Part shown: one piece after another, positions 20,481 through 63,542 of the stretch
How positions within the stretch are numbered: position 1 is the stretch's first letter
Layout of the letters: each line of letters begins with the position of its first letter
Assembly: GCA_965644295.1 (NCBI GenBank)
Contig: CBFFRP010000370.1
Location: 178,881 to 242,880 of the forward strand
Origin: Paraphysomonas bandaiensis
Taxonomy: Eukaryota; Protista; Chrysophyceae
Direction of reading: 5' to 3'
DNA length: 64,000 nucleotides
The notes under the pieces: model-generated
What the model saw: the letters and a program-made list of their open reading frames with translations, nothing else
Database searches by the model: none
Told to the model about the DNA's origin: nothing
Program-made: the position numbers and the translations under genes

Positions 20481-23400
20481 TTAAATCCCAACGCCTTCAG
20501 ATGAGCCGGTTCTGCACTCCGCAGCCGAACCTCTATTGCTGGCAGAAACATGGTTGGAGAAGGCCACACTAAGTCTCCGCAGATCCAAGTCGTGGCGCTG
20601 CAACGCGGTAGAGAGACTTCTCTCTATCCCTATACATCGCTGAAGAAAGCCCACCTTATTTTCGACCATTTCATGCGGTAATTGTACATCGTGGAGAAAG
20701 GATTCCATACTTTTCACTACAGATTTTAGAGACTCTTCCAGTGAAGTCATACGTTTCATGAATACGGCATTAATTATTTTCTTGGATGCTCTTTTCTCCT
20801 TCTTCTGCTGCTTTTCTAAGTATGATTGGTGGACCTCCCAAAACGTGCTCGCAGCCACTGTAAGAGGCATGGCAAGGTAAAATGCACCAAAAAGCATTAG
20901 AAATATACTCATAATCTGTCCAATATTTGTAACTGGGACAATTTCACCGTACCCCACAGAAGTCAGTGTAACAATCGAAAACCATAATGCATCCAAGACG
21001 TTCGAGAACTTGGATTCCTCTCCCAGCTTGTTGACGGATATGCGTCGTCCATCCTTCAGCGTGCCCGCGATATCGTCAGGCACATCACAGTTGCTATCAC
21101 CAACGTAGCAAGCAGTCCCCTTCTCGACCTCATATAGAAGAAGCGCGAATACAGTGACTATAAAAAATAGCAGCATCAATATGCCTACGATCTGCCGCCA
21201 AGCTTTGTTCGCAGTGGTCACTAGCACCTGGGAGGCACTAAAATGCCTCGTAATCTTAAATAATCGAAACACCTGCGAAAATATAAGTAACCTCAAATTG
21301 AAATGCCAAAATATTGCAAACATCAACATACAATAAAGAAATGGACACTACTCACCTTGATTGACTTGAGCATAACCAAAAGAATGGGCTCAGGTGACGA
21401 GGCCAGGATAGCGAAGTCGAGGCTGAAATTGGGCTCCCTCAACGCAGTGATGATGTCAACGTAAAATGGGGCGACTGACAGCATATCAAACACATTCAGT
21501 ATGTCCATGAAAAACCCATACAAGGAGTTAGACACAAATATTCGCAAGAATATCTCCACAGTGAAGCAGAAATTGACAAATATCTCTAGAGGAACCCATC
21601 CATGATTGCCGTCCACAATCTGGACAGCGTCATATTTACACTCTATGCGCGTACACACCGCCTGAATTTGGTGCATTTTGTCGCGGGATACGATGAAGTC
21701 AGGGGCCCTAAAGTTAGAAGAGAGCTGGTCGCTGGTCTCAAAGGGAAGGTTATCTTCGTCAGCGCAGGTGACATTGGTATATCTTGCTCCGAAGTTAATA
21801 CCATGTCCAAAGCAATCCAAATCATTGCAGTTGTACCGCAGCCTCTGATTTGTGACGCCAGTGGAGTTGTGCACGAAACAACCGGCATCCAGAGAAGGGT
21901 CGTCTTTGTCCATGCAGTAGACGCCCAAAACTTTTCCACAGAGATACGAATCCTCCCCATAATGTGAAAAAGTGGGCAGCGTCTGTGTGTATAGCATAAA
22001 TACTGATAAAAGGATCAAAAATATGAAAAAATACTGCAGCATGCGCGCCCCTTTGGAGGAGTGGGGAAATTCCATTAACATCCATATCCTTGTTCGCAAG
22101 GACTTAGGGTTCTGCACAGCTCGCTCCATGTTCTTCGCGAAGTCTTCGCTGCTCCTCCACTTGTTAGCAATGTCTGGGGCGGATTTTGCCATCTTGACTA
22201 GGAATGATATAGAGTCTTTATTCTTAGATCCCAGGAATTTTCGTGTGATCGCGATACTCCATTCAGAGCTGGAGAGCCTGTTAAGCCCCCGTAGGGCTCT
22301 TGATACCTCCCTTGACCCACGACGAGCCTCCCTAGAACGAGGATTGCTAACTGCTACCTCACGACGTTTATGATCCAGCTTGTGTTTCGAGTCCGATGTA
22401 GGCTTCATTTCCACCCCTTCCCCTTCTTCGCCAACTACCGCCAATAAACCAGTACCAGATGTCCGGACAGGTCTCCGCCCAAATTCACTCTTGTGACTGT
22501 CTCCTTCCTCGTTACCATCACAATGGCATGTCGTCGTTGCAGTGTTTGCACTTCCTACGACGCCATTTCGACTGAAGGACATACTCTCTTCTTCGTCAGA
22601 AACAGGTGTCACAGTACGAATTACTTTAGACTTAGAAGGAGATTTATGCGAGAAAGGCCAACGCATCGAATGATTCTGAGAGGATGGGGAAGATTCAGGG
22701 GTACTGAACTCGTCTTCTTCCCCTTCAACGAGATCCGGTACTTGCTGTTGCAGTTCCGCACCAGAAACGAATGAAGATAAGATTTCTTCTGATCCCATAT
22801 CATCCTTCTCATCCACTTGACACCCCTCCAATTCATTATCATACTGCTCATCCAAGGGGACTAGTGTACACTCCCTTTCAGCATTGGGTTTAATGGTGCT
22901 CTTACGGAAAACACTAATTTTCCGTTGCTCCTTAGTCACTTCACCTTCCGTTAACGTCTCTACCGCGGTTCTAATATTGTACAACAGGGGTGCAATCCAT
23001 CCCCTCAGTTCGCATATGGCCAGGAGTATGGCAGGCGTCATCTTAGTTGCCGACGCTGTCAAGACATTGAGTTCTCGCAAAGCCTTCTCCACATTTCGCC
23101 GGCACTCTAATAAGGGAGACATTACTGCGTGCGCCATCAAGTCCGCCACTTCCGGGGAAATTCTGATATCTGCTTTGCTATCAATCTTCCCCGGCGACAC
23201 AACACCATCTCTTCCTGATGTTGATGAAGCTGAGGTCTGTCCCTGATGTAGACTCTGTCCCTCCGCTACTCGTACCCCTTCAGCGGCCTTCTCAATTACA
23301 AGCGAACATTCTTCGTCAGCCAGACCCTCCCAAGCACTGCTGTACTCATTGCCGATAATAGCTAGTGGCATTGACAAGAAGAGGGACCCGAAGAGCATTA

Positions 23401-25354
23401 CAACCACAGATACTACCCTGGCGGGAAGGAATGATGGCACTTGGTTTCCATAGCCAGCTACGCACACCACAGTTAGAAATCATTCACTTTCTTATATAGG
23501 CAAATTCCCACAGATATACACACGATCACACAGTACACATGTACAGAACTGTATCAACTTACTTGTGGTCATGGTTACGACGGAAAAGAAACACGCATCG
23601 AAGAGATTCTCCCAGGCACATGTCTCAAAGTTATAACAGGGCTCCATAAAGTATAGAACTACCCCAAAAAATATATTGAAAAGAAGAAAAAAGAAGAGGG
23701 GTAGTACCAAGTGCACCATGGAGCGGCTCAGAGCGATTCGGATAGCGCGCACTGGGGGAATATCTTTCGAGGCACGAAGAATTTTCCCAGAAGACAAAAG
23801 GTCAAGGCATCTTAAAAGTAATCGCGGGAACTGACTAAGATGTTTATCTGCAGGATAAAGATACACAATTCGGACTACAAATGGCACGACACAGCAGACA
23901 TCGAAAACAAACAATACGCATTGAAAGATATCATTCATAAACTTCTCGGCTACATCTTTATTCTTCAGGAAGATGCCTGTAGCCACAGCAATACGACAGA
24001 AAGCGTCAAAGCACATCGGTACCCAACATATGACCTGAATAGTGATGTATGTCTAGCGGAAAGAGAGCACATCAGTTAGAGTATAAGAGAGCAAATGGGA
24101 GAAAACATATGAGTGAGAGCATATAAACTATCAAATGTGATATACGAGTAAAAGAGGTCAGAGAGTATGAGAGAATAAGAGGTCAAGTAATAGAGCATAA
24201 CAGATCTCATACAAGGTGTACCTGAAAATGTATATGAGTGTGTATATGAGTGTGTGTTTATATGTGAGTGTATATATATAACTGGGTTTATATATAACAG
24301 TATATATATAAGAGTGTGTAAAAATATATGAGAGCATATATTTGAGTGTATATATGTATGACTGTGTTTATATTCGTATATATATATGAGTGTATATATA
24401 TATGAATGTGTATATGTGAGTGAGTGTATATATGTATGAGTGTGTTTATATTAGTATATGTATAGGAGTGTATATATATGAGTGTGTATATGTGAGTGTA
24501 TATATAAGAGTGTGTATATGTGAGTGTGTGTATATGAGTGTATATATGTATGAGTGTGTTTATATTCGTATATATATATGAGTGTATATATGAGTATGTG
24601 TATAATAGTGTGTATACATGAGTGTGTTTATGTGAGTGAGTGTGTATATGTGAGTGAGTGTGTATATGTGAGTGTGTGTATATGAGTGTATATATATGAG
24701 AGTCAATATATGAGTGTATATATATGAGAGTCAATATATGAGTGTATATATATGAGAGTCAATATATGAGTGTATATATGAGTATGTGTATAAGAGTGTG
24801 TATACATGAGTGTGTATATATGAGTCTGTGTTAGTATATGACTATGAGTGTGTGTTTGTGTGTGGGACTCACCTGTTCATTGGGCATATGCGGATAAGTA
24901 GACATGTCCTTCCGCCCCTCGTAGTGGTTACGTCCATCAACAGTCTCCATCGCAAGACACACAGCATTGAGTATAACACACATGCTCATGATGAAGCTCC
25001 ATCTTGAGGCCCATGCAGACGACCTCGGCTCTGTTAACAACAGCACCAAATCATACAACTCCACCATACGGAACCCCCGCCGAGAGAGAGAGAGAGAGAT
25101 AGGGCACCGCAGGCTGTGTGTTTGTTGTGGATACTCTGGAGGCAGGTCTATATGTGTGCTGTGACAGTGTGGAGAGGTGTGCTGGGATGTTATGCATGGG
25201 AAGAACGGCAGGGACTACAGGACCAGTATACACGTCATGTATGTAGAATTCTTATACGCAGTAGTGCCATCTATACTGCTCTGTACACTGTACTACAGAA
25301 TGTAGTCTGGAACCTGAACTACGATCGTACGACTACTGTATTTGCATCACCCAT
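20481..25354 (-). CDS. Voltage-gated K+ channel-like protein with two tandem 6TM modules
   Basis: Two pore loops, FFSVVTMTTTGYGNQVP (spliced across 23459-23562) and WFSIVTLTSVGYGEIVP; two pre-S1 EPxSS/FPHSS motifs; two S6 segments (LSMPL, LAMPL). Start uncertain. Confidence 0.88.
24230..24860. repeat. TG/TA/GA low-complexity tract inside a Kv-channel intron
   Basis: Degenerate TATATGAGTG repeats. Confidence 0.85.
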
Positions 25355-28644: not shown

Positions 28645-30375
28645 CCTCTGATAACACGCGCCAGTGAGTCCTAGGGCACACTATCAATAAGGCGAACCTC
28701 ACAATCCTAATCGAATAGAGTTTGTGAGTCTAGTCAAGCATCCGGGCTAGTTAGCCTTAAGGACAGAGAGCGAAAGTGGTTGCACCTTGGTAGTATCGCC
28801 TAATAGCATTATATTATAAGGATTAAGCATTAGTTAGTTAAATTGTTTTGCTACATTATTACTGAGTTCTGACTATTACACGCCTAACGCTAATAATTAT
28901 ACTTACATCCTTACCATCAGAACTTCTGAATTCATCGGAACTTTCACTATATATTACTATTATATTGAAAGTCTTATTTTTAGCAATAGGCGTTAAAACC
29001 CTGCACCAATTAGTGGCTAGAAGAATGCTAGTCATACTAGTTAGACTACTACCCGTAACTAATCAATACAAACTCTTTTATCCTATTATTTAACGCTACA
29101 GAAGCTGCTTGTGCGTCGCCGCAAGCACCAAGGTGCAACCACTTCCGTTCTTAGTGTGTGTTATGAGGCTCGCCATGATCGTGTGTCCTGGGACTCACCG
29201 GCGCGTGTGATCTGGAGGTCTCCTCTTGGGATGAGACTCCACTCGCTATATGATAGATAGCCTTATGTACCTCACGGGGACTGACTTATTAGCCTTATGG
29301 CAGTTAGGGGAAACAGTAATATGCCCTTCTGAGATTGGCGATCTGGTGGCCTTCCTTTAGGCAGTGTTCCAAGTGGCTCGGAGGTATGTGGATGAAGGTC
29401 TTGCAAAAGGTTATGGCCTACTGTGAAGAAGCGTCGAAATCGGCTCTTTTGCTGTCTTAGCCAGCGGTAGAGAACACATGCAAGAGGGTGTATAGCTGTA
29501 CAGGGGTGGGATGTGAGGGTCATCCGGTGTGTCCAGCTACAGGGAATCGAGAGGGAGAGTGATGGTGCAAGAGAGGCAACTTCTGATTGAGGAGAGTGAG
29601 ACTGCGCAACTGAACAAGAGTCACTGAGGTCGAGTACTCTGATAGACCTATGCACGAGATGATCGTGATGACCCTGTCCCGGATGCCCTTGAGGTGGGCC
29701 CATTCCCGGATGCCTGTTTATTCGTCAGGGCCCAAAAAGACGTCTACACAAGTGACACTTATCGGTGTCCCTGGTACTACACAAGCATTCGGCTATGAGT
29801 GGGCAGAAGTATATCATCTGCTGATTATGTTTGCGGCTCACGTTAGTTTCCCAGAGACAATCTCTCCGGTACTTATCCCCCAGAACACCACGAAAAGGTG
29901 CGAGTCCGACTTTGTTGAGGGGGAACTTTCACTAACACTTTTTTTCCAGCTCGCTCTCTGTGACTTTATGCTCCTCATTGTTTGTAGTTGTAGCGCCATG
30001 TATATGTACTATGCCATAACAATGTGAATAAACATAAATATATATAATAATGGGTTTTATTTACTTCGATGTTATATAGTCAGCAGATATATTGTTCTGC
30101 CCACTCATAGCCAAATGCTTGTGTGGTACAAGGGACACTAATAAGTGTCACTTGTGTAGACGTCTTTGGGCCCTGACGAATAAACAGGCATCCGGGAATG
30201 GGCCCACCTCAAGGGCATCCGGGACAGGGCCCACCAGAAGGGTAACCGGGGTATTGGGCTGCCTGCTGAAGTTAAGCATCCGGGATGTTCACCTTAAGAA
30301 CTCAAAACACCTGAAGTCAGCAGATGTCAGGTATATCAACATTCTGCTTGCTCCCTGCGTTTGCTTTGAGTGATT
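28645..30375. mobile_element. Cluster of four copies of the dispersed repeat family in alternating orientation
   Basis: 28645-28908 (+), 28966-29670 (-, near-identical to 51228-51932), 29672-29938 (-), 30075-30375 (+). Confidence 0.8.
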
Positions 30376-37599: not shown

Positions 37600-39030
37600 T
37601 CAAGAATCAGCGGTTGCAGCGGAGTACCCATTGATATCTGGCAAAATGGTAATCACACCAGGTAATTCTTCAGTTGCTATAGATTCTACGACAGCTCCAT
37701 TACGGTTTTGCTCTTGCACACAGTACAGAGCGCGCAGCCCCCACTTTCGTCTTGCCCCTTCACAGAGCGAAACTTCTGTCTTGTAGGAGCACACCACCCT
37801 ACCATTGGAATCGGCACTGTCAGACTCGGAGTAACATAGTAGAGATCTTGCTTTATCGTTGGCTGATTCACGTGAAGCCGCATTTAAATAGTCGTGAAGA
37901 CCGCAAAAAGGAAGCATTTTGTACACAGTGAGTACTCCGATGCCGATCTCTTCTCCCCCCCAATTAACAACAGACAAATCCACAACTGGTGGAGGGCTGC
38001 TGTGATGCATATATGCTGCCTCCTGAGCGAAGGAGGACCCCCTCGAGTGCAGGATCAGGTCACAGTTCCCTAACACAATAAGGTCAACTAATGCCAGTCT
38101 AACAGCATCGGCCAAGTCTCTGCGGCTCGCTAGTTCAGTAACTACCTCCATAGCCAATACGCGCCCCGGAGAGAAGTGGGAAACTACTGCACGCTTAGCG
38201 GGCTCGCTGTTTGAGGCTAAAAAGAACCTGACCGAGGGATGCTTCTCCTGTATTTCCTGCATTGACGATATCACCACAGCTAGAGGTGTACTCTCGTCAA
38301 ACCGTAAAGCTCGAGCTATGCATTTTTCATCGCTAGAACACATAGCCGGAGTAACCACAGCCCAATCGTATGCAGCATCATACGCCCTAACATGCACACC
38401 TACCAATGGTCCATCTTCGTTTCCATCTCTGAGAAGGTTAAGCAGTTCTGTCACCATAGATTTGACCATCTTGATCGGTACTAGACTTCGATAGAAGGCA
38501 CTCTTGTGGTCCATGTAGTCATCACAAGTCATGTCAATAGGCGCGTGTGAACCAGCAGTGCGCAGGAGTATTATCCACGGAGACTTCTGTTCTCCGCTAC
38601 CATTCGATCGTGTATTGAATGACATGTTAACAAAGAATTCTTTCGGGAATTTGACCGCAATTTCTCTCTTAAATATGTGGCTGATGTTTCTAAAATCAGA
38701 TATGAGTTTGTCGTTAGTGAGTTGTGTGTTAGAGTCATATGAGACCACACGAACACCAGACGCCTCTGAATCCACTTCAAACAAATCACTAAACTCAGCA
38801 TTACATTCATATGAAGCGGTCCATATGATGATAAGCTTACGACTCATAGTCTGAGATATGCTGTACGCACTCGCCATTATACGCAACCTGTTGGCGAGTC
38901 CCAACACATCAACCGGAATTACGACATACATCTCATTCGGACTGAACACACCCGCTGATAGCGTATCAGTGCACTGGCGGGTCGATATGGATAAGAGGAG
39001 AGTGAGGAGTGATACTATGAGCCTCTGCAT
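37600..39030 (-). CDS. Fucosyltransferase-like glycosyltransferase (GT-B, O-FucT/alpha-1,2/1,6 superfamily), signal peptide, intronless
   Basis: GLANRLR, VGVHVR, FFLAS, ALVDLIVLGNCD..HSRGSSF motifs; hydrophobic N-terminus. Confidence 0.8.
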   Translation of the reverse strand: MQRLIVSLLTLLLSISTRQCTDTLSAGVFSPNEMYVVIPVDVLGLANRLRIMASAYSISQTMSRKLIIIWTASYECNAEFSDLFEVDSEASGVRVVSYDSNTQLTNDKLISDFRNISHIFKREIAVKFPKEFFVNMSFNTRSNGSGEQKSPWIILLRTAGSHAPIDMTCDDYMDHKSAFYRSLVPIKMVKSMVTELLNLLRDGNEDGPLVGVHVRAYDAAYDWAVVTPAMCSSDEKCIARALRFDESTPLAVVISSMQEIQEKHPSVRFFLASNSEPAKRAVVSHFSPGRVLAMEVVTELASRRDLADAVRLALVDLIVLGNCDLILHSRGSSFAQEAAYMHHSSPPPVVDLSVVNWGGEEIGIGVLTVYKMLPFCGLHDYLNAASRESANDKARSLLCYSESDSADSNGRVVCSYKTEVSLCEGARRKWGLRALYCVQEQNRNGAVVESIATEELPGVITILPDINGYSAATADS

Positions 39031-39265
39031 CTGTGGCTATACACACTGAGGTGTAGTGTGAAGTGCTCTCTCTATGTATGTATATGTATAGTCACTAACA
39101 GGAACTGTATCGCCTACACTGTATACGTATATGTGTATTGCACTCTTATGAACACGAAGAGCTGATACTGACACCTTGACGATGACAACTAGGACTCCGA
39201 TGAACTTATACCCTCGGAACTAACTGTCTGCCACTGCCTAACACAGAAACATATCGATACTTGCC

Positions 39266-40243
39266 CATACAGGTACAGTATAGTACTTGCGGAGTGATAT
39301 CGATATACATACACATACAGGTACAGTATAGTACTTGCGGAGTGATATCGATATACATACACATACAGGTACAGTATAGTACTTGCGGAGTGATATCGAT
39401 ATACATACACATACAGGTACAGTATAGTACTTGCGGAGTGATATCGATATACATACACATACAGGTACAGTATAGTACTTGCGGAGTGATATCGATATAC
39501 ATACACATACAGGTACAGTATAGTACTTGCGGAGTGATATCGATATACATACACATACAGGTACAGTATAGTACTTGTGGAGTGATATCGATATACATAC
39601 ACATACAGGTACAGTATAGTACTTGCGGAGTGATATCGATATACATACACATACAGGTACAGTATAGTACTTGCGGAGTGATATCGATATACATACACAT
39701 ACAGGTACAGTATAGTACTTGTGGAGTGATATCGATATACATACACATGTACTTGCGGAGTGATATCGATATACATACACATACAGGTACAGTATAGTAC
39801 TTGCGGAGTGATATCGATATACATACACATACAGGTACAGTATAGTACTTGCGGAGTGATATCGATATACATACACATACAGGTACAGTATAGTACTTGC
39901 GGAGTGATATCGATATACATACACATACAGGTACAGTATAGTACTTGTGGAGTGATATCGATATACATACACATACAGGTACAGTATAGTACTTGTGGAG
40001 TGACATGCATACGTATACAGGTACAGTACTGTAATATCGGTATACATACACGTACAGGTACGGTACTTGTGGAGTGATATTGATATACTTACACATACAG
40101 GTACGGTACTTGTGGAGTGATATTGATATACTTACACATACAGGTACGGTACTTGTGGAGTGATATTGATATACTTACACATACAGGTACGGTACTTGTG
40201 GAGTGATATTGATATACTTACACATACAGGTACGGTACTTGTG
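39266..40243. repeat. 48-bp minisatellite (~15 units) followed by a few 43-bp variant units
   Basis: Unit CATACAGGTACAGTATAGTACTTG(C/T)GGAGTGATATCGATATACATACA; one internally deleted unit near 39748. Confidence 0.97.
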
Positions 40244-40915
40244 TAGATCTGGTATAGGACATCCCATACAGCAGTACAGTTCTCTGTCACATCACGCACG
40301 TCCTCCTCGTATCATATCCTGGTATCCCGATATCTACCAATAGGAATCCAGCATACAGTATCTTCGCATGTGCGTGATGCATACGATACAAACCAGAGCA
40401 TTCCTCATATTACTATCGATACCTTCAAACGTCACTTCAGGTATAATTGAGACACATGAGGACCCATCAGCTGCAATGAGAATGACAGTAAGAGCCGATA
40501 CGCATATCCCACTCTGTAGTTTCTCTCGTGTATAACTCTCTGTGCGCTCCTCTTTAAGCTCCCTACCAAACGAAAAACTACCAGCGTAGTTCTTAAAGCA
40601 CACTATAGCCGCCAGATCGCCCATACAATTACAGCACAATAAACAACGAACAGTTCATTCACTTTTGTGTGGAGGCTACTTGTTTAAATCCCAGTAGCCT
40701 CATTCAGTAAGCACATATATGTCCATATGGTTCCGAATAAGGAAGAAGGAAGACTGATCAGCCATACGAGTTAAGTGGAGTGTTGCTAATAACATTTATA
40801 GTAGTGGATAGTGAAACTATGTAGTGGATAGAGGGCGTTGCATGCGTACACAGAGCACAGTATAATAACTATAACTGTAAATCAAACATGTTTAGAGTGT
40901 TATTAGATATATTTT

Positions 40916-42408
40916 GGGAAATATTATTTAACCTACTCAATTTGGTTGACAAACCTAGTCATACCAAAATTGGTGGAATAACCTAGTATTAGTAAGAAAT
41001 GGCTCAACCTAGTCGTTCGTATATCCTATGATTACGCACTGTGACTGTCTAAGATACAATTTACACCACACAATAATATATTAATGGCTTACAGAGCATT
41101 AAAACAAACAGTCAAACATAACAATAAACTCGTATATACATATCTATTTAACATAGATGTATGTCTATCTATAGCTTATAACTATATAGCGATGGGTCTC
41201 CAGTGAGTGTTATGTAAAAGAGGGGTTCATGAAGCTGTGGATATAGCTCACACTATGATCTGCAGGACATCTTGAGACCTTCATGTGCTGTGAGCGATAG
41301 CGTTTATCTTCCTTCATTTCAAGTGGACTGTATAGAGCTCCAGCAGAATTTCAGTATCGTGAGGAGTGTGTCGTGCGATGGAGCGATTAGTCATACAGTA
41401 TCATGAGGTGTGTGTCGCGCAGTGGATCCATTATACATTATTATAGGCACCACAGTACATATATATATGTTGTAAAGGAGAGCTCTTACATATATAATAT
41501 CTGATTATTACAACATAAGAAAGGCTGTGTCTAGTATTCGTAAGTAGTGTGGCTATGGATTTAAGGAGCTATGAAATTCGCTACTTGGGGAGTGGAGTAG
41601 GTGGCGTGTAAGTGAGAGTCGGCTAGTTCCTGTGTTAGGGGTGCTGTCTATGGCAAGTAGCAGCTGTTTCCGGAGTGGATGTGCAGGCCTGGACCGTGGG
41701 CGGGATACAGTATTACAGGCACCACAGTATATATATGCTGTAAAGGAGATCTCTTACAAAATCAAGAGAAAAGTCTATGTTGCTATCGCTCTTGTCTACA
41801 ACTGTCCGCGGCTGCGGGCTGCGGGCTGCGGGATAGCCGCAATTGATCCTACTCTCTAGCCGTACATTACTTGTGTGGTATACGCAGTTTATGACTCGAC
41901 AGAATTAGATACAATAGATAATATAATAGTAAATTTACAAGGTCAAATAACAAGTAATGACACAGATATAACAAACTTACAATCTCAAAATACAACATTA
42001 CAGAACAATATAAATACTAAACATGATTTAATCGATGTAAATAATAAACTTGATTCATCATTAGTATATGATTCAAGATATATATATATACTCTGCATAT
42101 ATATATTAGAAAGCTGTGGATCTGCACCGGACATGGTTACAAGAAACTGTCCAATTTTCATTGACATGTGACGTTGAAATGTGATGTGTGACGTGTATAT
42201 AATATCTACATTCATTAATTGATGGCTAGAGTATGCTCCCATGTTTGAATAAAAATTTTCATTTTTGACTAGGTGAAAACCATAAACACCTAGTCAATCT
42301 AGTCAGTGTAAACTGAAATATGAATTATTAAATGACTAGGTTTGTACATCAATTTTAGTATGGCTAGGAAATTACACCAAATTGACTATAGGTCCAATAA
42401 TAGATCCC
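40916..42408. mobile_element. Non-autonomous Mutator-like element (Pack-MULE-like) with captured coding fragment
   Basis: 9-bp TSD ATATATTTT at 40907-40915 and 42409-42417; imperfect ~70-100 bp TIRs starting GGGA and containing repeated CCTAGT; no transposase. Confidence 0.8.
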
Positions 42409-45400
42409 ATATATTTTTAACACTTTATATTGCGATATCTGTATTCACTCTGCGATATCTGCATTATTATATAGTGTACTGCTTCTAATCATAGCTGCAA
42501 ATGAAAAAGCAATATAAGTCTATTATTGTCAACCAGGGTGGAGGAGCAGCAGAAGAAACGACCCCCGAAGAGGTTAAAGGTGTGTTTTAGTGGGTGAAAA
42601 TTCCACATATAGTTGACTGCTAGTTATACATGTATCTTTAAAAGATTTCACATCTATTTTACCTATGGGACTAGATAGTCATAGCATAAAGATTACTGTG
42701 ATCACTGTTGTTTTGTCTCACTGCAATCTACATTGAGTGGGAGTATTAGAATATGGATCTTATTCAAGTATATTCAGTATATGTCACTTGAAAACGATGT
42801 ACAAATGCTGTGATAATATTGTGAAACTGAAATAGTTTGATCTTTCAAGATATGCTTAGTAACGAGAGGTCGCATATGTAGGAGATTATGCGTGGAACAA
42901 AATGAGTCTGTGTTGTTTATCACAACTTCGTGTAAACGATATTAATAAATAACGACAAGTTTTCTCTGAGATCTAGTTAAGAATGAGCACTTTCCAGCAA
43001 TTATAAATTATTATAGATCAGAATAAAAAATGGTACCACAATGCACTATCTACTTGTACTGAGAAACTTCAATTACTTTCTATAGTATCTTTGTAGTTTA
43101 ATACGTATAGTAAATCAGTATGTTAGTTTTATATATATACAATGAATATATATGATCTAGTGGCGAAAACACATTTACGTAAATAGGGGCATATATCCCA
43201 CGATTCGAACATCACGGAAAATTTCGCTTGATTATCTCTCATTGTCTTTCGACGGCCCTCACTGAGACGACTACATATAGCCGAGAGAAGTATACGTTGT
43301 GTTTTACATATAAAACATAACGCTGGTTGAAGAGTCCAACAAACCACATAAAGAAATTAAGAACATATATTTTAAATAAATGAGGTGAAAAAAATACGAG
43401 CATGTCACCCAACGTACAAATATGATGCAATCACCCTACAGCCCTTCAGCAGCCACAATGGCCGCTGAAATGATATCACGGGCACTAATTCTATAGTTCT
43501 GAAGAATTCCTTTCTCCCCAATATCAGCAATTTTAAAATCAAGTAATGTCACACGCATATTGACTTTAACGGACCATATTTCACCACGTACTGTTGAAAC
43601 CACAACAGGTCGGCCATATTCCAAAACACTCCAGATCTACGTTATAAAATCTATAAGAACAACCTATAGTGCATTTGATTTTTTACCTTATCCCCCCTGA
43701 AGAGAGACAGTGACACACCGGTGTCCACTTCCAGCTCGAATATTGCTACAATTTCTTCTGCTCCACGACCGGTCACGGTCCCAGCTCCTGAATTTTCCTT
43801 ATAACAACCCTCTTCGACTTCGCAACGACCCATCCTCCCTTCGAGCATGTCTCCAGTGAGTGTTATGTAAAAGAGGGGTTCATGAAGCTGTGGATATAGC
43901 TCACACTATGATCTGCAGGACATCTTGAGACCTTCATGTGCTGTGAGCGATAGCGTTTATCTTCCTTCATTTCAAGTGGACTGTATAGAGCTCCAGCAGA
44001 ATTTCAGTATCGTGAGGAGTGTGTCGTGCGATGGAGCGATTAGTCATACAGTATCATGAGGTGTGTGTCGCGCAGTGGATCCATTATACATTATTATAGG
44101 CACCACAGTACATATATATATGTTGTAAAGGAGAGCTCTTACATATATAATATCTGATTATTACAACATAAGAAAGGCTGTGTCTAGTATTCGTAAGTAG
44201 TGTGGCTATGGATTTAAGGAGCTATGAAATTCGCTACTTGGGGAGTGGAGTAGGTGGCGTGTAAGTGAGAGTCGGCTAGTTCCTGTGTTAGGGGTGCTGT
44301 CTATGGCAAGTAGCAGCTGTTTCCGGAGTGGATGTGCAGGCCTGGACCGTGGGCGGGATACAGTATTACAGGCACCACAGTATATATATGCTGTAAAGGA
44401 GATCTCTTACAAAATCAAGAGAAAAGTCTATGTTGCTATCGCTCTTGTCTACAACTGTCCGCGGCTGCGGGCTGCGGGCTGCGGGATAGCCGCAATTGAT
44501 CCTACTCTCTAGCCGTACATTACTTGTGTGGTATACGCAGTTTATGACTCGACAGAATTAGATACAATAGATAATATAATAGTAAATTTACAAGGTCAAA
44601 TAACAAGTAATGATACAGATATAACAAACTTACAAGCCCAAGATATAACATTACAGAACAGCATTGATACCAAACATGATATAATAGATGTAAATAATAA
44701 GTTGGATTCTTCATTGGTATATGATTCAAGATATATATATATACTCTGCATATATATATTAGAAAGCTGTGGATCTGCACCGGACATGGTTACAAGAAAC
44801 TGTCCAATTTTCATTGACATGTGACGTTGAAATGTGATGTGTGACGTGTATATAATATCTACATTCATTAATTGATGGCTAGAGTATGCTCCCATGTTTG
44901 AATAAAAATTTTCATTTTTGACTAGGTGAAAACCATAAACACCTAGTCAATCTAGTCAGTGTAAACTGAAATATGAATTATTAAATGACTAGGTTTGTAC
45001 ATCAATTTTAGTATGGCTAGGAAATTACACCAAATTGACTATAGGTCCAATAATAGATCCCATATATTTTTAACACTTTATATTGCGATATCTGCATTCA
45101 CTCTGCGATATCTGCATTATTATATAGTGTACTGCTTCTAATCATAGCTGCAAATGAAAAAGCAATATAAGTCTATTATTGTCAACCAGGGTGGAGGAGC
45201 AGCAGAAGAAACGACCCCCGAAGAGGTTAAAGGTGTGTTTTAGTGGGTGAAAATTCCACATATAGTTGACTGCTAGTTATACATGTATCTTTAAAAGATT
45301 TCACATCTATTTTACCTATGGGACTAGATAGTCATAGCATAAAGATTACTGTGATCACTGTTGTTTTGTCTCACTGCAATCTACATTGAGTGGGAGTATT

Positions 45401-46498
45401 AGAATATGGATCTTATTCAAGTATATTCAGTATATGTCACTTGAAAACGATGTACAAATGCTGTGATAATATTGTGAAACTGAAATAGTTTGATCTTTCA
45501 AGATATGCTTAGTAACGAGAGGTCGCATATGTAGGAGATTATGCGTGGAACAAAATGAGTCTGTGTTGTTTATCACAACTTCGTGTAAACGATATTAATA
45601 AATAACGACAAGTTTTCTCTGAGATCTAGTTAAGAATGAGCACTTTCCAGCAATTATAAATTATTATAGATCAGAATAAAAAATGGTACCACAATGCACT
45701 ATCTACTTGTACTGAGAAACTTCAATTACTTTCTATAGTATCTTTGTAGTTTAATACGTATAGTAAATCAGTATGTTAGTTTTATATATATACAATGAAT
45801 ATATATGATCTAGTGGCGAAAACACATTTACGTAAATAGGGGCATATATCCCACGATTCGAACATCACGGAAAATTTCGCTTGATTATCTCTCATTGTCT
45901 TTCGACGGCCCTCACTGAGACGACTACATATAGCCGAGAGAAGTATACGTTGTGTTTTACATATAAAACATAACGCTGGTTGAAGAGTCCAACAAACCAC
46001 ATAAAGAAATTAAGAACATATATTTTAAATAAATGAGGTGAAAAAAATACGAGCATGTCACCCAACGTACAAATATGATGCAATCACCCTACAGCCCTTC
46101 AGCAGCCACAATGGCCGCTGAAATGATATCACGGGCACTAATTCTATAGTTCTGAAGAATTCCTTTCTCCCCAATATCAGCAATTTTAAAATCAAGTAAT
46201 GTCACACGCATATTGACTTTAACGGACCATATTTCACCACGTACTGTTGAAACCACAACAGGTCGGCCATATTCCAAAACACTCCAGATCTACGTTATAA
46301 AATCTATAAGAACAACCTATAGTGCATTTGATTTTTTACCTTATCCCCCCTGAAGAGAGACAGTGACACACCGGTGTCCACTTCCAGCTCGAATATTGCT
46401 ACAATTTCTTCTGCTCCACGACCGGTCACGGTCCCAGCTCCTGAATTTTCCTTATAACAACCCTCTTCGACTTCGCAACGACCCATCCTCCCTTCGAG
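41196..46498. repeat. 2.65-kb tandem segmental duplication (41196-43845 and 43849-46498)
   Basis: Offset 2653 bp; 3-nt CAT at the junction; near-identical except 41961-42063 vs 44614-44716. Confidence 0.97.
43436..43845 (-). pseudogene. Duplicated 3' fragment of the prolyl 4-hydroxylase gene
   Basis: Identical to 46089-46498; lacks the catalytic exons. Confidence 0.85.
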
Positions 46499-48877: not shown

Positions 48878-50883
48878 CAGGCTTGCGTAATGCGTAACAA
48901 TTAATTGGTTTTAAAAGTGTTAATTTCAATCAGGGCTAGGAAACAATATATTGCAATACTATTGTTAGAGAGCGTTCAATCAATACTATTGATGGAGATT
49001 TTAAACAGGCCCAACAATACAATTACAATATATTGCAATACTATTGTTAGAGAGCGTTCAATCAATACTATTGATGGAGATTTTAAACAGGCCCAACAAT
49101 ACAATTTCAATATATTGCAATATATTAGTATGACTAATCAGTAAGTAAACACATCCGTAGATTCTATTTTTAGTATTAGTCATTAAGATCACATGACAAC
49201 CAAACCAACAACTGCTTATAGCTACTAAAAGTCCACCTCGTCCTCATCCTCTGAGCCATTATCGGTGACGTCAACATCATCATATTCATTAACAGAATTT
49301 ATTGAAATATGCTAGTATTCGGCCACAACTGTCGAATCGCCTTCAGAAACAACAACATATTAAGTAGGATGGATACTTTTGCGAAACACTGATATAATAT
49401 GTTTAGCTGCGCTGAACAGACGCTCCCATGTATTGAAAGTACATACCAGGGCCTGGTAACCGTTAATGACCCGTGGACCTGTACGCTTCTTAAGTTTTTG
49501 AGCTGACTGAAGATTTTTATTCGCATAGTCAACATCAGTTTCATCATCCTTTGTAATGTTGTAATCAATTTCTCGGTTATTTATATCCATTTTGCACCCT
49601 ACAGTTGAGAATCTTCTCTTATATGACTATCATAATATTGATCGCAATATATTGCAATATATCGTGAGATACTTTAACAGAAACAATATTGATGGGATTT
49701 TTGGCCGGTCGACCAATCAATATATTTACAATATATTGTGCAATGTATTGCAATTCAATATATTGTTTCCTAGCCCTGATTTCAATTATTATTATTGGTA
49801 AATGTTGCCAATTAATTGCAATTAATTGGCTGGCTGAATTATATATAGCATCTAGCATCTTACGATATCTAGCTACTGGTCTTAGCTACTTATCATTTTA
49901 TTAATCTTAATTAGGGTTAGTATACACTTTTACCACGGCATGCAAGAGTAATATATCGTGTCAAATATCGTTGGCAAATAACAAGTAGCGCACCTTCATA
50001 ACGATCGTCTAGATACATAACATATATAATGTGATAGCATATTGAACTGCTTCGAAATATTCAAGTATAGTAGTGTAAATGACGTTATAAGTGTATTCGT
50101 TAGGTATCACTATCAGAGGAAGAGAAGTATGTGTTTGTGCAAGAATACCTTAATACAGATGATCCGTAGGGTGCGTGTACAACTATAATGGACTAGAAGC
50201 ATTGGATAGCCATATACATATCATTCTTTTTTATTCAACAGGATGGCATCGAATGAACAAATTTGATGATTTAAATCGTCAGTACCCTGGGATGATATTT
50301 CACCTCGGTGCAGACGCGAAAATTGTTCACAACGAGACTTCGAGAGAGTAGTAGTCAAAATTCAGCGCGGTAGGGAAGAGGAACTGAACCACGCTGAAAA
50401 AACACAGATGCGACGCTTTTTGATAAAAGATGTACCTGCACACGAAGGTTAACTTGATGAAGAGAAAGATGACGAGGGGGAAGATGAGGCCATTCGTTTA
50501 CTTAAAGACAACCGAAAGCGCCAAAAAGCACGTATCAAACTTCCAATACGATATCGTTGCATGAAGTACTTGTATAGCACTACCAACATGTTTGTGAGAG
50601 GTTTTTTAGCAGAGCTCAGATTGTCATGACTAGATTTTCGCAAGCGAATGACACTTAGACACCTTGAAATTAATAATGTTGAGTTTTCTGGGTGAAAATG
50701 TTAATGTTTCTTTGAGATGAGATTATAATTCAGAAAGTTATTCTAGAATCTATTAATAGAATTAAAGGTAATTAATTGGCAATCATTGCCAATAATTGGA
50801 TGCTTGATTAATAAAATTGCAATAATTATTGTTGGACACCTGTCACCAATTAATTGCCAATTAAAATTTGTTACACAAGCCTG
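48878..50883 (+). mobile_element. Non-autonomous hAT DNA transposon with decayed transposase C-terminus
   Basis: 8-bp TSD CTCCATAT (48870-48877, 50884-50891); TIR CAGGCTTG(C/T)GTAA; remnants HLGADAKIVHN, VVKIQRG, ERFFS at 50260-50670. Confidence 0.9.
48931..49778 (-). mobile_element. Second hAT element nested in the first
   Basis: TIR CAGGGCTAGGAAACAATATATTG; 8-bp TSD ATTTCAAT (48923-48930, 49779-49786); minus-strand ERLFSAAKHIISVFRKSIHP dimerisation-domain remnant. Confidence 0.92.
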
Positions 50884-51227
50884 CTCCATATACACATCAG
50901 ATGAGCACCCATATTTAAAATCAAGTCAAGTGTACAAGTATCATAATAGAACAGTGCTACGCTTTATCTCACAGAAGAAGCAACAGTGTTAGACGCCCTA
51001 CCTCTATCCATATCCTTGCATTTCTTGATTGCCCCGCCTTTGTTGTACTTTCTTCTATAGACATCATATTATTGAGACTTCAAGAAGGGCCTGTTCGCCT
51101 GTTCGACTTCGAGCACTTTTCTCTTAAATAGAGCAAGTCGGCCTCCTCCACTCTTTTGCTTCATCAGAGTGGTTTATTTGTATTTAGTTCCTATGATCAG
51201 TGCTACACAGCTTAAGCTGCTATATAT

Positions 51228-53238
51228 TGAATGTCTGATTATTTAGCAATAGGCGTTGAAAGCCTGCACCAATTAGTGGCTAGAAGAATGCTAGTCATAC
51301 TAGTTAGACTACTACCCGTAACTAATCAATACAAACTCTTTTATCCTACTATTTAACGCTACAGAAGCTGCTTGTGCGTCGCCGCAAGCACCAAGGTGCA
51401 ACCACTTCCGTTCTTAGTGTGTGTTATGAGGCTCGCCATGATCGTGTGTCCTGGGACTCACCGGCGCGTGTGATCTGGAGGTCTCCTCTTGGGATGAGAC
51501 TCCACTCGCTATATGATAGATAGCCTTATGTACCTCACGGGGACTGACTTATTAGCCTTATGGCAGTTAGGGGAAACAGTAATATGCCCTTCTGAGATTG
51601 GCGATCTGGTGGCCTTCCTTTAGGCATTGTTCCAAGTGGCTCGGAGGTATGTGGATGAAGGTCTTGCAAAAGGTTATGGCCTACTGTGAAGAAGCGTCGA
51701 AATCGGCTCTTTTGCTGTCTTAGCCAGCGGTAGAGAACACATGCAAGAGGGTGTATAGCTGTACAGGGGTGGGATGTGAGGGTCATCCGGTGTGTCCAGC
51801 TACAGGGAGTCGAGAGGGAGTGTGATGGTGCAAGAGAGGCAACATCTGATTGAGGGGAGTGAGACTGCGCAACAGAACAAGAGTCACTGAGGTCGAGTAC
51901 TCTGATAGACCTATGCACGAGATGATCGTGATGATGATGATGGTCTGGAGGAGACACTCGGACGTCCTCAGCTGCTCTTGTTAGTGTCTGTGTTGGTGCA
52001 GGGGGGTACAGACTGAGGCATAGAGAGTGTGTGTAAGGAAGATGACGGCAAGGTATCAGAGACGAAGGGAGGGGAGATGGTTTGTCTGGGGGTTTTCTAG
52101 GAGGAGGTAGAGTGTACTGTGTGTGTGTATGACACTGCAGTGGTGTTATGAGTGTGTTGGACAGAGAGAGAGAGCTGGTGATGTGTCCAACAGTACAGGT
52201 AGACAGGTACATGGACATGGTGATGTGTCCAACAGTACAGGTATACAGGTACATGGACATGGTGATGTGTCCAGCAGTACAGGTAGACAGGTACATGGAC
52301 ATGGTGATGTGTCCAACAGCAGTAGAGGTATACACGGAATGGTATACATCCTGTAGGACACAGTAGTACAGTAGTCGAGTATACCGTATGGAATACAGTG
52401 TCTATCCAATGAGATGGATGGGCTGTGGGGGTGATAGGTGAACAGGGTGAGGGGGTAGCCTGCTGGGTGGATGGACCACAGACAAACCATGTTGGGTTGG
52501 GTTGAGTGGGCGGCAGAAGGCAGCCCTGTTGCACAGTTGAGAGGGATCGAGAGTATTCAGTGATTGCATAGGGGGTCCATGGGGGTCGTTTTCGTGAGCC
52601 TGCTCGCACGAGCCATGTTCTGAGAGGTTGTAGCCGTAGAAAGCGATGGGTGAGACGAAGTTGTCTGCTGAGGGGATAGCACATAGGTGCGGTCAGCGCT
52701 GCATTGGTGCAGGCACGTGGTTTAACTGAAGTAGTTGAGTAGGGTGAAGGTTGCAAGGCCAGGCAGGGGGGCTTGGAGCGTGTACAACATGGTGTGACAG
52801 GTAATTTGTCAGAAGCGTGGTGGTCAACAAAATGCAGCAGTAAGGGAGTGTAAAAGGCCCTGGGCACACTGATGTGACTCAGCCACGGTCTCAATAGAGA
52901 CATTGGGCTTGGAGCTGGTTAATAGGGTGAAACTTTATGTTGGACTGTATTTGCCATCGTAGGGCAGAGAATATCTCTTAAGCTGCTGTTAACAAGCATC
53001 GGGGAATGGGCCCAGCTCAAAGTCATCCATGGTACTGGGCTGCCAAAAGTCAAGCATGGGCTGTTCAGCTAAAGGAAAGAGAGAGTGAAAGTGGTTGCAC
53101 CTTGGTGCTGGCGGTGACGCACAAGCAGCTTTCGTAGCGCCAAATAGTAGGATATCAGAGTTAAGCACTAGGTAGATAAATTGTTTAGCTATATTAGTTC
53201 TGACTTTTACACGCCTATTGCTAATAATCAGACATTCA
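51228..53238. mobile_element. ~2-kb element with non-identical inverted ends (longest member of the dispersed repeat family)
   Basis: Both ends read TGAATGTCTGATTAT(T)TAGCAATAGGCGT inward; C-rich minus-strand ORFs 51535-52335 and 52097-52903; 42-bp internal tandem repeat 52177-52320; no TSD seen. Confidence 0.7.
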
Positions 53239-59096: not shown

Positions 59097-61558
59097 ATTG
59101 AAGTCGTCATCTTATGGCATATCAGCATAGATTACCTATTCACCAGCTATACATGTATGCACTCAGTGTGTTTATGTTCATGCAACAGTTCAAGATCTAG
59201 ATATGTGGTATATGTTCTGTGTCTTCGCTCTGTGTGCTTCATACAACATATATAGACCATGTATGTGGTATATGTTCTCTGTATGTGCTTCATACAACAC
59301 ATTGAGACCATATATGTGGTATATGATCTGTATGTTCGCTGTGTGTGCTTTACACAGCACACAGAGACTGTATATGTGAAATGTGCTCTGTATATTCACT
59401 CTGCGTGCTTCATACAACATATATAGACCATGTATGTGGTATATGTTCTCTGTATGTGCTTCATACAACACATTGAGACCATATATGTGGTATATGATCT
59501 GTATGTTTGCTGTGTGTGCTTTACACAGCACACAGAGACTGTATATGTGAAATGTGCTCTGTATATTCACTCTGCGTGCTTCATACAACACGCAAGAACC
59601 ATATATGTGGTATATGATCTGTATGTTCGCTGTGTGTGCTTTACACAGCACACAGAGACTCTCTATATATTCACTCTGCGTGCTTCATACAACACGCAAG
59701 AACTATATATGTGGAATATGTTGTGAATATATTACTCTGTGCTCTTCATGCAACATACAGGGACTATGTATGTGTTATATGGTGCGTAGTATCACACTTT
59801 ACCCCTCATACAACACGCAAAGACTATATATGTGGTATATGATATATGCGTTCACTCTGTGCGCACCATGCGACACGCAGGGACTATATAAGTATTGTAT
59901 GATGTATGTATTATGTATTCACTATGTGCTCTTTGCTCTTCATGCAATACACAAGGACTATTGAAGTGCTATATGATGTGCATTTTTGAACTCTGTGCTT
60001 CATATAACACAGAGAGACTATTGAAGTGTTTTTAGTGATCTGTATGTTTACTATGTGCGCTTCGTACAGTACACAAGCACTCAATGTATGGTATATGACG
60101 TGTAGTTTCGCTCTCTATGCTTCGTATATAGTATTTAGCACATAGCGACTATGTAGGTAGTAGGCGCAGCACTTTGCAGTTATATATAGCACTGGGTTTA
60201 TATGTTTAGTCTGTAAACTCCGTCGAGTAGAATTTTAATAACAGTGGAAAATGACATTAAATTGTCATATTTTATTGTGTAGTATTAGTACTTAGAGTGC
60301 TACTGCCAACTGTACACGATGGGATAGGAAGCCAGAATAGTACAATAATAAAGTACTTATGTAAATAGTAAACCTTTAAAGCAAAAAATACGTTATCTAT
60401 TAAAAACTAAAAACAAGCGTGCACTGTGGATTACAGTGTTCAAATTAAAAAATCAGCAACATCAAACTTAACCATACACTGTGCTAGCTACAACCATATG
60501 CTACGCTACTTCCATCGCCCCATTGTCGTCAGGTGTTCTTAGTGCCTCGATTGCTTTATGAAGTCTGTACTGACGCCTCTTGGCGATACATATTCCTCGT
60601 AACAATACTTTTTCTTCGTCTCCATTTTCTCTGGCCTCAGCCTTGGCTGTCGGCCTATCCAAGCTATATCCCTATGTACTATATACTGTGTGCGAAGCAT
60701 AGTGAGTAAACACATACATCATATAACACTGATATAATCCCCGGCTACTATACGAAGCATAGAGAGCGAAACTACACGTCATATACCATACATTGAGTGC
60801 TTGTGTACTGTACGAAGCGCACATAGTAAACATACAGATCACTAAAAACACTTCAATAGTCTCTCTGTGTTATATGAAGCACAGAGTGCAAAAATACACA
60901 TCATATAGCACTTAAATAGTCCTTGTGTATTGCATGAAGAGCAATGAGCACATAGTGAATACATAATACATACATCATACAATACTTATATAGTCCCTGC
61001 GTGTCGCATGGTGCGCACAGAGTGAACGCATATATCATATACCACATATATAGTCTTTGCGTGTTGTATGAGGGGCAAAGTGTGATACTACGCACCATAT
61101 AACACATACATAGTCCCTGTATGTTGCATGAAGAGCACAGAGTAATATATTCACATCATATTCCACATATATAGTTCTTGCGTGTTGTATGAAGCACGCA
61201 GAGTGAATATACAGACAGTCTATGTGTGCTGTGTAAAGCACACACAGCGAACATACAGATCATATACCACATACATGGTCTATATATGTTGTATGAAGCA
61301 CGCAGAGTGAGTATACAGAGCACATTTCACATATACAGTCTCTGTGTGCTGTGTAAAGCACACACAGCGAACATACAGATCATATACCACATATATGGTC
61401 TATATATGTTGTATGAAGCACACAGAGCGAAGACACAGAACATATACCACATATCTAGATCTTGAACTGTTGCATGAACATAAACACACTGAGTGCATAC
61501 ATGTATAGCTGGTGAATAGGTAATCTATGCTGATATGCCATAAGATGACGACTTCAAT
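59097..61558. mobile_element. Foldback element: ~0.8-1.0 kb inverted arms built of ~42-43 bp subrepeats around a ~0.6 kb spacer
   Basis: 59097-~60133 is the near-perfect reverse complement of ~60746-61558; the left arm has additional subrepeat blocks. Confidence 0.88.
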
Positions 61559-62199
61559 ATTCGTGAAAACACAGTCTTAAAATATTGTAACGAGAATACG
61601 TAATAATAACAAGGTTATGTGTAGCACTAGCATCTATAATCATGTAAACAAGCAGCAGAATGCAACAAGAGACAATATAACACACTTATATACTCTTCCA
61701 CTCAAATACCTACACTTCAATGCAGACGACACAAACACAATGAAGCCATATATCGCATAGATCCGATATATATCCGCAAATACACTACAAATGAGACTAA
61801 TAATGAAGTGAGGTCTGCGCATGGAAGACTCCCTATTGTCTACATAGCAGCTGAATGATTATCTCCCCTAAAAATACAAACAATGAGCTTACAGGAAGCG
61901 GCAACAACGCTGAGTACATCACCAGGTTCAGAGGACCAGGAATACATCCCTCTCACTCCCCATCATCTGATATTTCAACCAGATATCAGTGTTGATGTGA
62001 CTAACCACAGAAACTATCCATTCTTATGTATTGGTGTATTTATTATGACAGGAGTGTACAAATATGATGATTTTAAAGGAATATACATACATGTATATCT
62101 ATATGAAGATCCGATTGCAATTCTGATGATAAAAAACACACTAAAGAATGGCACCTCAAAAAACAGCGACACCGGAAAACGGAGCGAGTGGGATACGAC

Positions 62200-63542
62200 C
62201 GACCACAACAACATTTTTATGTCCGTTGTTAAGGGGGTAACAGTGGGGCTGTTAATCGCCATAGCTTTCGTGATGAACATGGTAATTCATCAACTGGATG
62301 TGTCTAACGCATTTCTATATGCAGATATAGAGGGGGATGTATATATAGAAGGCAACTCCGGACTTTCAGCTGCCTGAGGGGTACTGCTTTAAGTTGAAGA
62401 AGTCGTTATACGGGCTTCGAGTTCCCATGATCGTGGTGGAAAACATTGGATAAATTCATACGATCTATACATTTTAAACCATGTGTATTAGACCCGTGTT
62501 GTATTATCAGTATAAGGGCGATGAATTGATATTATTAACGATATGTGGATGATATCCTAGTGTTAGGTCGCGATCGGTCATGCATAGTGAAGGTTATTAA
62601 AAGCTCAACTGTGTGCCCCGGTTTGATATGAGAGGATATGGGCGAGATGGAACATTTTCCTGAATGTTCGAGTCACAAGAACACCTGGTAGATTCGTCTT
62701 GACCAATCAGTATATGCGGCTCAGATCTTAGAAAAGTTTGAAAAGTATCTTGGGTCACCGCGAAAGGTACGGAAGAGTCCCCTACCGGCGGAAGCATATG
62801 GATTTAGTGGCAAAAAGGGGCGCGGCATGAGCATACCGAGGAGGAACAGCTTATAGTAGATAACTTCCCATATCGACTGTTGATAGGTGCATTACTATAT
62901 CTATCGATGAACACGAGGCCGGATATGTGCCTATGCAGTGGGAGTACTGTCTCGGTTCAGTAATAAGGTGAATATTGGAGAAGTATGCAAGCTATTAACA
63001 CATGTGCTTAATATATTCGTGGTTCTATTGACAAAAGGGATTCAATATGGGAGTAGAATGGGTTCGACTTCCATATATTTACTGACGGATTGGGCGGGAG
63101 ATCAGCTCTCCAGGAAGTCCACGTCGGGGTACGTTGGGTTTGCAGCGGGGAGGCCTATAGTCTGGCAGTCCAAACTGCAGACGACAGTGGCAACGTCAAG
63201 CATGCAGTCTGAGTATCAGTGTATTTACTCGGGTCTCCAAGAAGTGCTTTATGGGTTCGGGGGGTGACGGGTGAGATTAAGTTGAGGCTCATCAAACCCA
63301 CACCATTCTTCATCGACAGTCAGAGTGCCCAGGATTTGGCCGAAAACCCAGTGTTCACAAGAAGTCGAAGCACATTTGAGATTAAGTATCACATGGTGAG
63401 AGAGCACGTGGATCCCAATCAGTTCAATACGATTAAGTTAGTGCATGTGCATACATCGCAACAAGCAGCAGATATTTATACAAAGTCATTGGTTGGTTTA
63501 TCATATATGGAGCAGAGAAAGAGAAATCTTGGAGAAAGTTAA
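62200..63542 (+). pseudogene. Decayed Ty1/Copia pol (RT-RNase H), frameshifted
   Basis: HQLDVSNAFLY, KLKKSLYGL, YVDDIL, IGALLYLSMNTRPD, DWAGD..SRKSTSGY, WQSKLQTTVATSS..SEY, QAADIYTKSL spread across frames. Confidence 0.95.

Follow-up and report, generated by a model that had tools for sequence, protein, structure and literature searches.

The stretch analysed here, 64,000 nucleotides of Paraphysomonas bandaiensis contig CBFFRP010000370.1 (assembly GCA_965644295.1, positions 178,881 to 242,880 of the forward strand; hereafter the window), contains a head-to-tail duplication of 2.65 kb, in which one short, virus-like coding module is present in two diverged versions within otherwise near-identical copies. 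Copy 1 occupies 41196-43845 and copy 2 occupies 43849-46498 (2650 bp each), and the two agree at all but 18 sites. When the window was compared with itself at an offset of 2653, identity was about 25%, as in random sequence, up to 41195; the bases 41196-43845 then equalled 43849-46498 apart from the mismatches, after which identity fell back to random. Read-out of the junction gives a 3-bp filler (43846-43848) that is present in neither outer flank and is the reverse complement of the three bases with which the right flank begins. The duplication breakpoints are unique, and no third copy of the 2.65-kb unit or of its variable cassette was detected within the 64-kb window (blastn with word size 9; tblastn with an expect value, E, of 10). 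Near-identical head-to-tail copies and a defined junction mark the locus as a recent tandem segmental duplication and, provided that the assembly is correct, it would be a real and very young one in the Paraphysomonas nuclear genome. The duplicated unit consists of the 3' end of a conserved host gene, truncated in copy 1, and, for the rest, of AT-rich spacer; as a whole it has the look of an ordinary segmental duplication.

The differences between the copies are concentrated in one short segment. Seventeen of the 18 mismatches lie in 41961-42063 (44614-44716 in copy 2) and the last is at 42442 (paired with 45095), which leaves 1 difference in 2545 bp outside the cassette; such clustering (17/18 differences inside 103 of 2650 bp) has a binomial P of 1.8e-23. 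In the plus-strand frame of the open reading frames (ORFs) 41875-42171 and 44528-44824, each of 98 codons, the 17 changes fall in 14 codons, eight with synonymous and six with replacement changes (S/A, N/D, T/I, N/S, N/D and L/I), and there are no indels and no stops. They comprise 11 transitions and 6 transversions, and the synonymous excess is significant (P = 4e-4). All of the clustered differences are contained in a conserved 35-residue repeat module (the cassette) at 41959-42063 in copy 1, for which copy 2 has an alternative version at 44612-44716, both on the plus strand. The two versions are 84% identical at the nucleotide level, with a longest perfect run of 21 nucleotides, and their divergence per synonymous site (dS) is 0.80 and per nonsynonymous site (dN) 0.088 (dN/dS 0.11). 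The original prediction, made from the letters of the window, had counted 17 substitutions in 14 codons, 8 synonymous and 6 replacement, and one further difference, and the alignment of the copies agrees with it throughout. It had also described a pair of near-identical 2.65-kb duplicates, which is accurate as to their identity, with the correction that the copies are adjacent, in tandem, rather than dispersed.

The cassette is part of a 189-bp virus-like fragment on the plus strand, at 41887-42075 in copy 1 (version 1) and with the same bounds at 44540-44728 in copy 2 (version 2). A four-residue unit-boundary motif stands at both ends of the fragment, and the same motif closes modules in two virus-like metagenomic contigs (L015 and L017), which indicates that the fragment is exactly one 177-bp period plus 12 nucleotides of a coiled-coil repeat gene; its 12-nucleotide boundary repeats match at 9/12 positions. 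As a viral gene it is truncated at both ends, and it contains no internal stops and no frameshifts; a stop-free run over 63 codons has P = 0.002 at the fragment's base composition. Its G+C content (GC) is 23%, compared with 48-50% in host exons, although host spacers also reach about 25%. AlphaFold2 models residues 4-62 as a single continuous helix (predicted local distance difference test score, pLDDT, of 94).

Searches for related sequence separate the fragment from everything around it. In tblastn with the proteins of contigs L010, L011 and L015-L017, matches in the window were confined to the fragment, and with the proteins of L001-L011 and L015-L017 no other viral genes or element ends were found beside it, nor any capsid, ATPase, polymerase or integrase nearby. 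No ATG-initiated ORF was found for the fragment, and there was no close protein among approximately 15 billion predicted proteins, which included one Paraphysomonas transcriptome. Pfam returned only sub-threshold coiled-coil noise for the fragment ORF, Rfam gave no match to any part of the window and a word-indexed protein search with the 98-residue ORF gave a single weak match. The fragment and its relatives had no match to PHROGs, to Pfam stalk families or to solved structures, and IMG/VR scans yielded only distant stalk-like relatives at 70% identity or less. The fragment resembles an endogenous viral element in its viral homology, in having relatives that are accompanied by hallmark genes and in its host-embedded position with differing composition; it departs from one in that further viral genes or element ends do not adjoin it. 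Its sequence suggests that 189 bp of the spacer are the relic of a virus gene for a large fibre-like protein, corresponding to one period of a coiled-coil repeat. A non-functional relic is the most likely status, in which case the intact frame reflects youth rather than host selection.

The viral affinity derives from a HMMER scan of 1.84 billion representative proteins, which produced 50 matches, all of them long repetitive proteins aligned in several stretches (E = 5e-19). The best match, P0002, is a 1461-residue protein on a 448-kb metagenomic contig with a GC of 23%, where a Pox_A32-type packaging ATPase is encoded two genes downstream and a DUF5710 protein approximately 7 kb upstream. The fragment shares 78% amino acid identity with one unit of P0002 over 45 residues and 74% with a second over 39. 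A further relative, P0007, is on a GC-25% contig with Pox_A32 and DUF5754, and three related Joint Genome Institute (JGI) metagenome contigs have a GC of 24-28%, with Pox_A32 ATPases on two and an integrase with rve and chromodomain on one. Altogether, four contigs (L010, L011, L016 and L017) have a Pox_A32 ATPase adjacent to the repeat gene or in its vicinity. Gene order is common to L011, L015 and L017, in which the repeat protein is followed by a homologous protein of 411-504 residues, with the ATPase next in L011 and L017. The stretches compared for gene order are L011 10001-16418, L015 197-8095, L017 4435-12008 and L016 586-6171. The rve and chromodomain integrase of L016 adjoins its ATPase, a hint that some members of the group have a polinton-like or integrating lifestyle. 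Tara Oceans samples contributed further relatives, including one of the <0.22 um fraction. No capsid gene was identified on the virus-like contigs of the relatives.

Each full-length relative has 7-12 modules, and those that were tested have an Ig-like surface domain at the C terminus; among the distant matches are a YadA_stalk protein and surface proteins of bacteria or phages. The modelled continuous helix and the 7- to 12-fold repetition in full-length members are those of a fibre or stalk repeat. The relatives resemble the fibre or spike proteins of large DNA viruses, from an AT-rich lineage that would be either Nucleocytoviricota or polinton-like. Polinton-like and giant-virus-derived elements are numerous in chrysophyte genomes, and capsid genes of polinton-like viruses are present in transcriptomes of Paraphysomonas (10.1101/2025.06.17.660233; PMC7805220).

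The limits of the cassette coincide with those of the module that the viral family conserves. When two units of P0002 were aligned in register with the fragment, they were 88% identical at the nucleotide level across the 105 bp that correspond to 41959-42063, compared with approximately 35% outside the module, in the preceding linker and the following bases. Only this segment is conserved between viral units, and the cassette is therefore the conserved 35-residue module of the repeat, while the 72 bp to its left, which are identical in copies 1 and 2, are the variable linker. At the level of the family, conservation runs a few codons past the module on both sides. A profile of 38 modules from four virus-like proteins was used to count states per column, and at 6/6 replacement sites the residues of version 1 and of version 2 are each represented among these modules.

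For each version, the nearest relative is the other one. At 84% nucleotide identity they are closer to one another than to any module in the databases (73.5% or less), and pairs of modules from different viral contigs likewise stay below 84% (maximum 80.4%). The dS of 0.80, the dN/dS of 0.11 and the synonymous excess indicate divergence under protein-level selection well before the duplication, and since the versions are nearest to each other the donor would have come from the same source lineage. By these comparisons, the two versions are pre-diverged sister members of one source lineage and not products of local mutation. The earlier suggestion of two long-diverged, selected repeat units in one identical context is thus borne out, both by the dN/dS and by the identity of the cassette with a family module. 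Its suggestion that the variants are virus-derived also stands, given that the closest relatives are fibre-like repeat units on AT-rich contigs with a Pox_A32 ATPase.

The host gene at the right end of the unit runs on the minus strand, and its exon model was inferred from the minus-strand reading. The last two predicted exons, at about 46567-46334 and about 46289-46089, are ORFs bounded by GT..AG introns of the local type, and the right breakpoint (46498/46499) is inside the penultimate one, so that the 3' end of the gene would recur in copy 1 in 5'-truncated form (43436-43848, minus strand), in which ORFs 43651-43848 and 43436-43624 equal the ORFs of copy 2. The filler at the junction creates an in-frame ATG before the truncated copy and thereby a 65-codon ORF (43651-43848, minus strand). 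Upstream exons of the same gene are predicted at about 47935-47375, 47326-47213 and 47047-46885 (minus strand) and weakly resemble prolyl-4-hydroxylases or 2-oxoglutarate (2OG) oxygenases. Exons were searched one at a time: the largest has unnamed homologues with E down to 1e-21 and a weak match to prolyl 4-hydroxylases among PDB sequences (E = 0.0065), whereas Pfam gave no match on single exons. Motifs of 2OG oxygenases (His-x-Asp and following) may be present in the exons that come after the largest one, as judged by eye. The 2.65-kb unit was also considered as a mobile element, a reading that was rejected since the unit includes 3' exons of a conserved host gene. A mutually exclusive exon pair was rejected as well, because the whole unit was duplicated, truncated neighbour gene included.

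Within the duplicated unit, upstream of the virus-like fragment, there is a direct repeat of approximately 55 bp (86%) at 41433-41490 and 41705-41758, with equivalents in copy 2, which is followed by a triple GCTGCGG run at about 41806-41830. Approximately 950 bp to the left of the duplication is a minisatellite array of about 1.1 kb (39139-40245) with 48-bp units (about 21 copies, 88% matches), which are gradually replaced by 43-bp units toward the right end.

The surrounding DNA is eukaryotic, with sparse ORFs, numerous minisatellites and genes for a K+ channel, a p25-alpha protein and a CDC14-type phosphatase, in addition to a copia fragment. The K+ channel ORFs (20481-23470, minus strand), which have one intron of 76 bp (GTGAGT..CAG), encode a product that is 98.9% identical to a protein of transcriptome MMETSP1103, of the genus Paraphysomonas (taxid 36769). 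Paraphysomonas is a colourless chrysophyte, or golden alga. An identity of 98.9% rather than 100% places the strain or allele of the window about 1% off the transcriptome strain, and the window is Paraphysomonas nuclear DNA. MMETSP1103 also holds a 61%-identical paralogue of the channel. The transcriptome protein was the only near-identical match, no genomic contig in the homologue search exceeded 61% identity, and exact look-ups of three window ORFs gave no other assembly of the organism in the collections searched.

Taken together, the data slightly favour a real, recent duplication in which the module of one copy was replaced through homology-limited ectopic gene conversion or template switching. 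The tandem duplication would have covered the 3' end of the host gene and the adjoining AT-rich spacer with its viral relic; during or after this event, the 35-residue module of one copy would have been overwritten from another member of the module family. The route might have been ectopic (non-allelic) gene conversion or a replication template switch, possibly in the same replication-type event as the duplication itself, and the 3-bp filler at the junction fits a template switch of this type. An exchange of this kind could begin and end only where units are alike, and the patch would accordingly halt at the module edges and leave the remainder of the 2.65 kb unchanged. The donor would lie outside the window, as another endogenous fragment or as viral DNA. 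What the sequence shows is the tandem copies, the grouping of their differences, a divergence of coding type, the affinity to viruses and the match between cassette and module; a correct assembly, recombination as the maker of the patch and a donor beyond the window are what we infer. Clustered differences in otherwise identical paralogues, with a coherent alternative that is a bona fide module of the family, are the pattern expected of gene conversion, which fits best among the three mechanisms that the original prediction had put forward. The same observations speak for one recombination patch, or for an effect of assembly, rather than for a hypervariable system: the label 'hypervariable' does not suit a locus at which two states only were seen, with no donor array in the 64-kb window and with neither expression nor a diversifying mechanism in evidence.

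Several points weigh against replacement by recombination. No donor identical or near-identical to the converted tract is present in the 64-kb window, and the best module in the collections reaches 73.5% nucleotide identity. Sequences that are 84% identical with perfect runs of at most 21 nucleotides are a poor substrate for homologous recombination. The outermost differences lie 2 nucleotides inside the left edge of the module and, on the right, 12 nucleotides short of the end of the fragment, so close to these edges that the tract ends need a donor resembling the flanks for approximately 10-20 nucleotides. Furthermore, the duplication and the phasing of the module versions were both read from the assembled sequence alone.

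An artefact of assembly or polishing, in which one copy with two alleles was laid in tandem or identical copies were mis-corrected by paralogous or viral reads, is unlikely, though less so than the other rivals. It would explain the near-perfect identity outside the patch (1 in 2545) and the restriction of the patch to the sole stretch with relatives elsewhere, where foreign reads could map, and Paraphysomonas cultures can carry virus-like sequences (PMC7805220). Against this, the three junction bases are absent from both flanks and the breakpoints are unique, 17 mismatches per 2.65 kb are too few to keep long reads from collapsing haplotypes, and the kilobase minisatellite arrays that were resolved in the window suggest that long reads were able to span a 5.3-kb duplicate. 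Even if the tandem arrangement were artefactual, the sample must contain two pre-diverged modules in identical flanks. Differential loss of units is improbable; it starts from an ancestral insert of at least two tandem 177-bp periods with alike linkers and different modules, of which each duplicate, or the assembler, kept another one. The boundary motif at both ends of a fragment of exactly one period plus 12 nucleotides is what such losses could leave behind, and relatives with 7-12 modules per protein provide a precedent for the ancestral array. However, linkers are the least conserved part of the viral relatives (about 35-43% at the nucleotide level), yet copies 1 and 2 do not differ at all in the 72-bp linker; the reading also demands two separate deletions, each of them exactly in register, and the 12-nucleotide boundary repeats agree at only 9/12 positions.

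Explanations that invoke an active process find less favour. The relic might not be inert, in that a host locus, or an expressed exon derived from the relic, swaps its fibre module with those of viruses related to the source, whether infecting or endogenous, a reading we regard as very unlikely; if it were true, the copies would record repeated recombination between virus and host, or modules resembling a virus attachment protein that the host has kept as a decoy or interference factor. Less probable still is programmed variation of an expressed host gene whose virus-derived exon is repeatedly swapped, with infecting viruses or an array of silent donors as the source. The replacement of a whole module in frame and without stops, the AG just upstream of the fragment and the GT at the module end, and the resemblance of the family to attachment fibres, a class often under diversifying pressure, are all compatible with such a system, but only two states are seen, the window contains no donor array, and the fragment is without an ATG-initiated ORF and without a close counterpart in the protein collections searched, the Paraphysomonas transcriptome among them. 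Moreover, the entire 2.65-kb unit was copied, truncated neighbour gene included, as in an ordinary segmental duplication. Local hypermutation or relaxed evolution after duplication, whether by editing-type damage, a diversity-generating retroelement or error-prone repair, has a probability close to nil. Tight clustering is what it would predict, yet synonymous change dominates (dN/dS 0.11), and the 11 transitions and 6 transversions are of many types rather than of a single editing class; this synonymous excess and mixed spectrum exclude mutation in place. The changed sites are not adenine-specific (A at 7/17 in version 1 and at 2/17 in version 2) and there is no adjacent reverse transcriptase, the only trace of one being a copia fragment approximately 17 kb off, which excludes a diversity-generating retroelement; both versions, in addition, match states that are found in viral relatives. 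Replacement by recombination thus stays the preferred account, and on present evidence the locus does not reveal a new diversification mechanism.

Other features of the window lie outside the duplication. At 48921-49788 there is an element of approximately 870 bp with 42-nucleotide inverted repeats at its ends (86% complementary) and the look of a miniature inverted-repeat transposable element (MITE); it includes a perfect 82-bp tandem duplication (48943-49106). A direct repeat of 716 bp is dispersed at 28957-29671 and 51220-51934 with 98.2% identity (11 mismatches, 2 gaps) and is probably a fragment of a repeat element. Further right, 59097-61558 is a large inverted duplication (59455-60131 versus 61422-60745, 96.9%) of 60-bp minisatellite units, adjoined by the copia-type RVT_2 fragment (61883-62377) that is the sole reverse-transcriptase trace in the window. 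To the left of the duplication, 37600-39030 (minus strand) is an intact ATG-initiated ORF of 476 codons with only a sub-threshold match to NodZ, a fucosyltransferase, and its exact product was not found in the gene-position collection.

If the assembly is right, the locus provides a natural example of a homology-limited recombination patch in which the shared homology is a single protein-repeat module, and at least two versions of a fibre-type module are present in Paraphysomonas, derived from an AT-rich lineage of large DNA viruses, a lineage otherwise known only from marine and freshwater metagenomes. What would be new is Paraphysomonas as a host lead for this virus group, together with an unannotated family of fibre-like repeat proteins, and a clear case of a conversion-like tract that equals one protein-repeat module.

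Parallels exist with several known systems, each of them partial. Antigenic-variation cassettes such as trypanosome variant surface glycoprotein (VSG) genes, Neisseria pilE/pilS and Borrelia vlsE likewise exchange an in-frame segment for a diverged homologue between fixed flanks, but here no silent donor array, expression site, promoter or third variant was seen in what is a plain tandem duplicate. Diversity-generating retroelements also direct most change to one short, variable part of a surface-type protein; in contrast to them, this locus has no adjacent reverse transcriptase or template repeat, and its changes are mostly synonymous and not adenine-specific. The predicted protein segment, a polar, N/D/T/Q-rich periodic sequence modelled as one long helix, recalls the stalks of viral and phage fibres and of trimeric autotransporter adhesins (YadA-type stalk), although neither the relatives nor the fragment have a Pfam stalk match, a PHROG match or a relative of solved structure. 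Like the endogenous Nucleocytoviricota and polinton-like elements of protists, the fragment is virus-like coding sequence of viral base composition between host genes, albeit at 189 bp, with one repeat period of one gene recognisable and a best database match of 78% at the amino acid level, the source virus itself being absent from the databases. The closest likeness in process is to non-allelic gene conversion patches, which share the short clustered block in identical copies, the pre-existing, selected family sequence and limits that would be set by homology; unlike those, the patch described here has no donor in the window, its homology is short and 84%, and the piece is a virus-derived relic rather than part of a host gene family. 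Overall, the locus behaves like a classical non-allelic gene-conversion patch in the fragmentary endogenous viral element of a young segmental duplicate, and both kinds of event are known.

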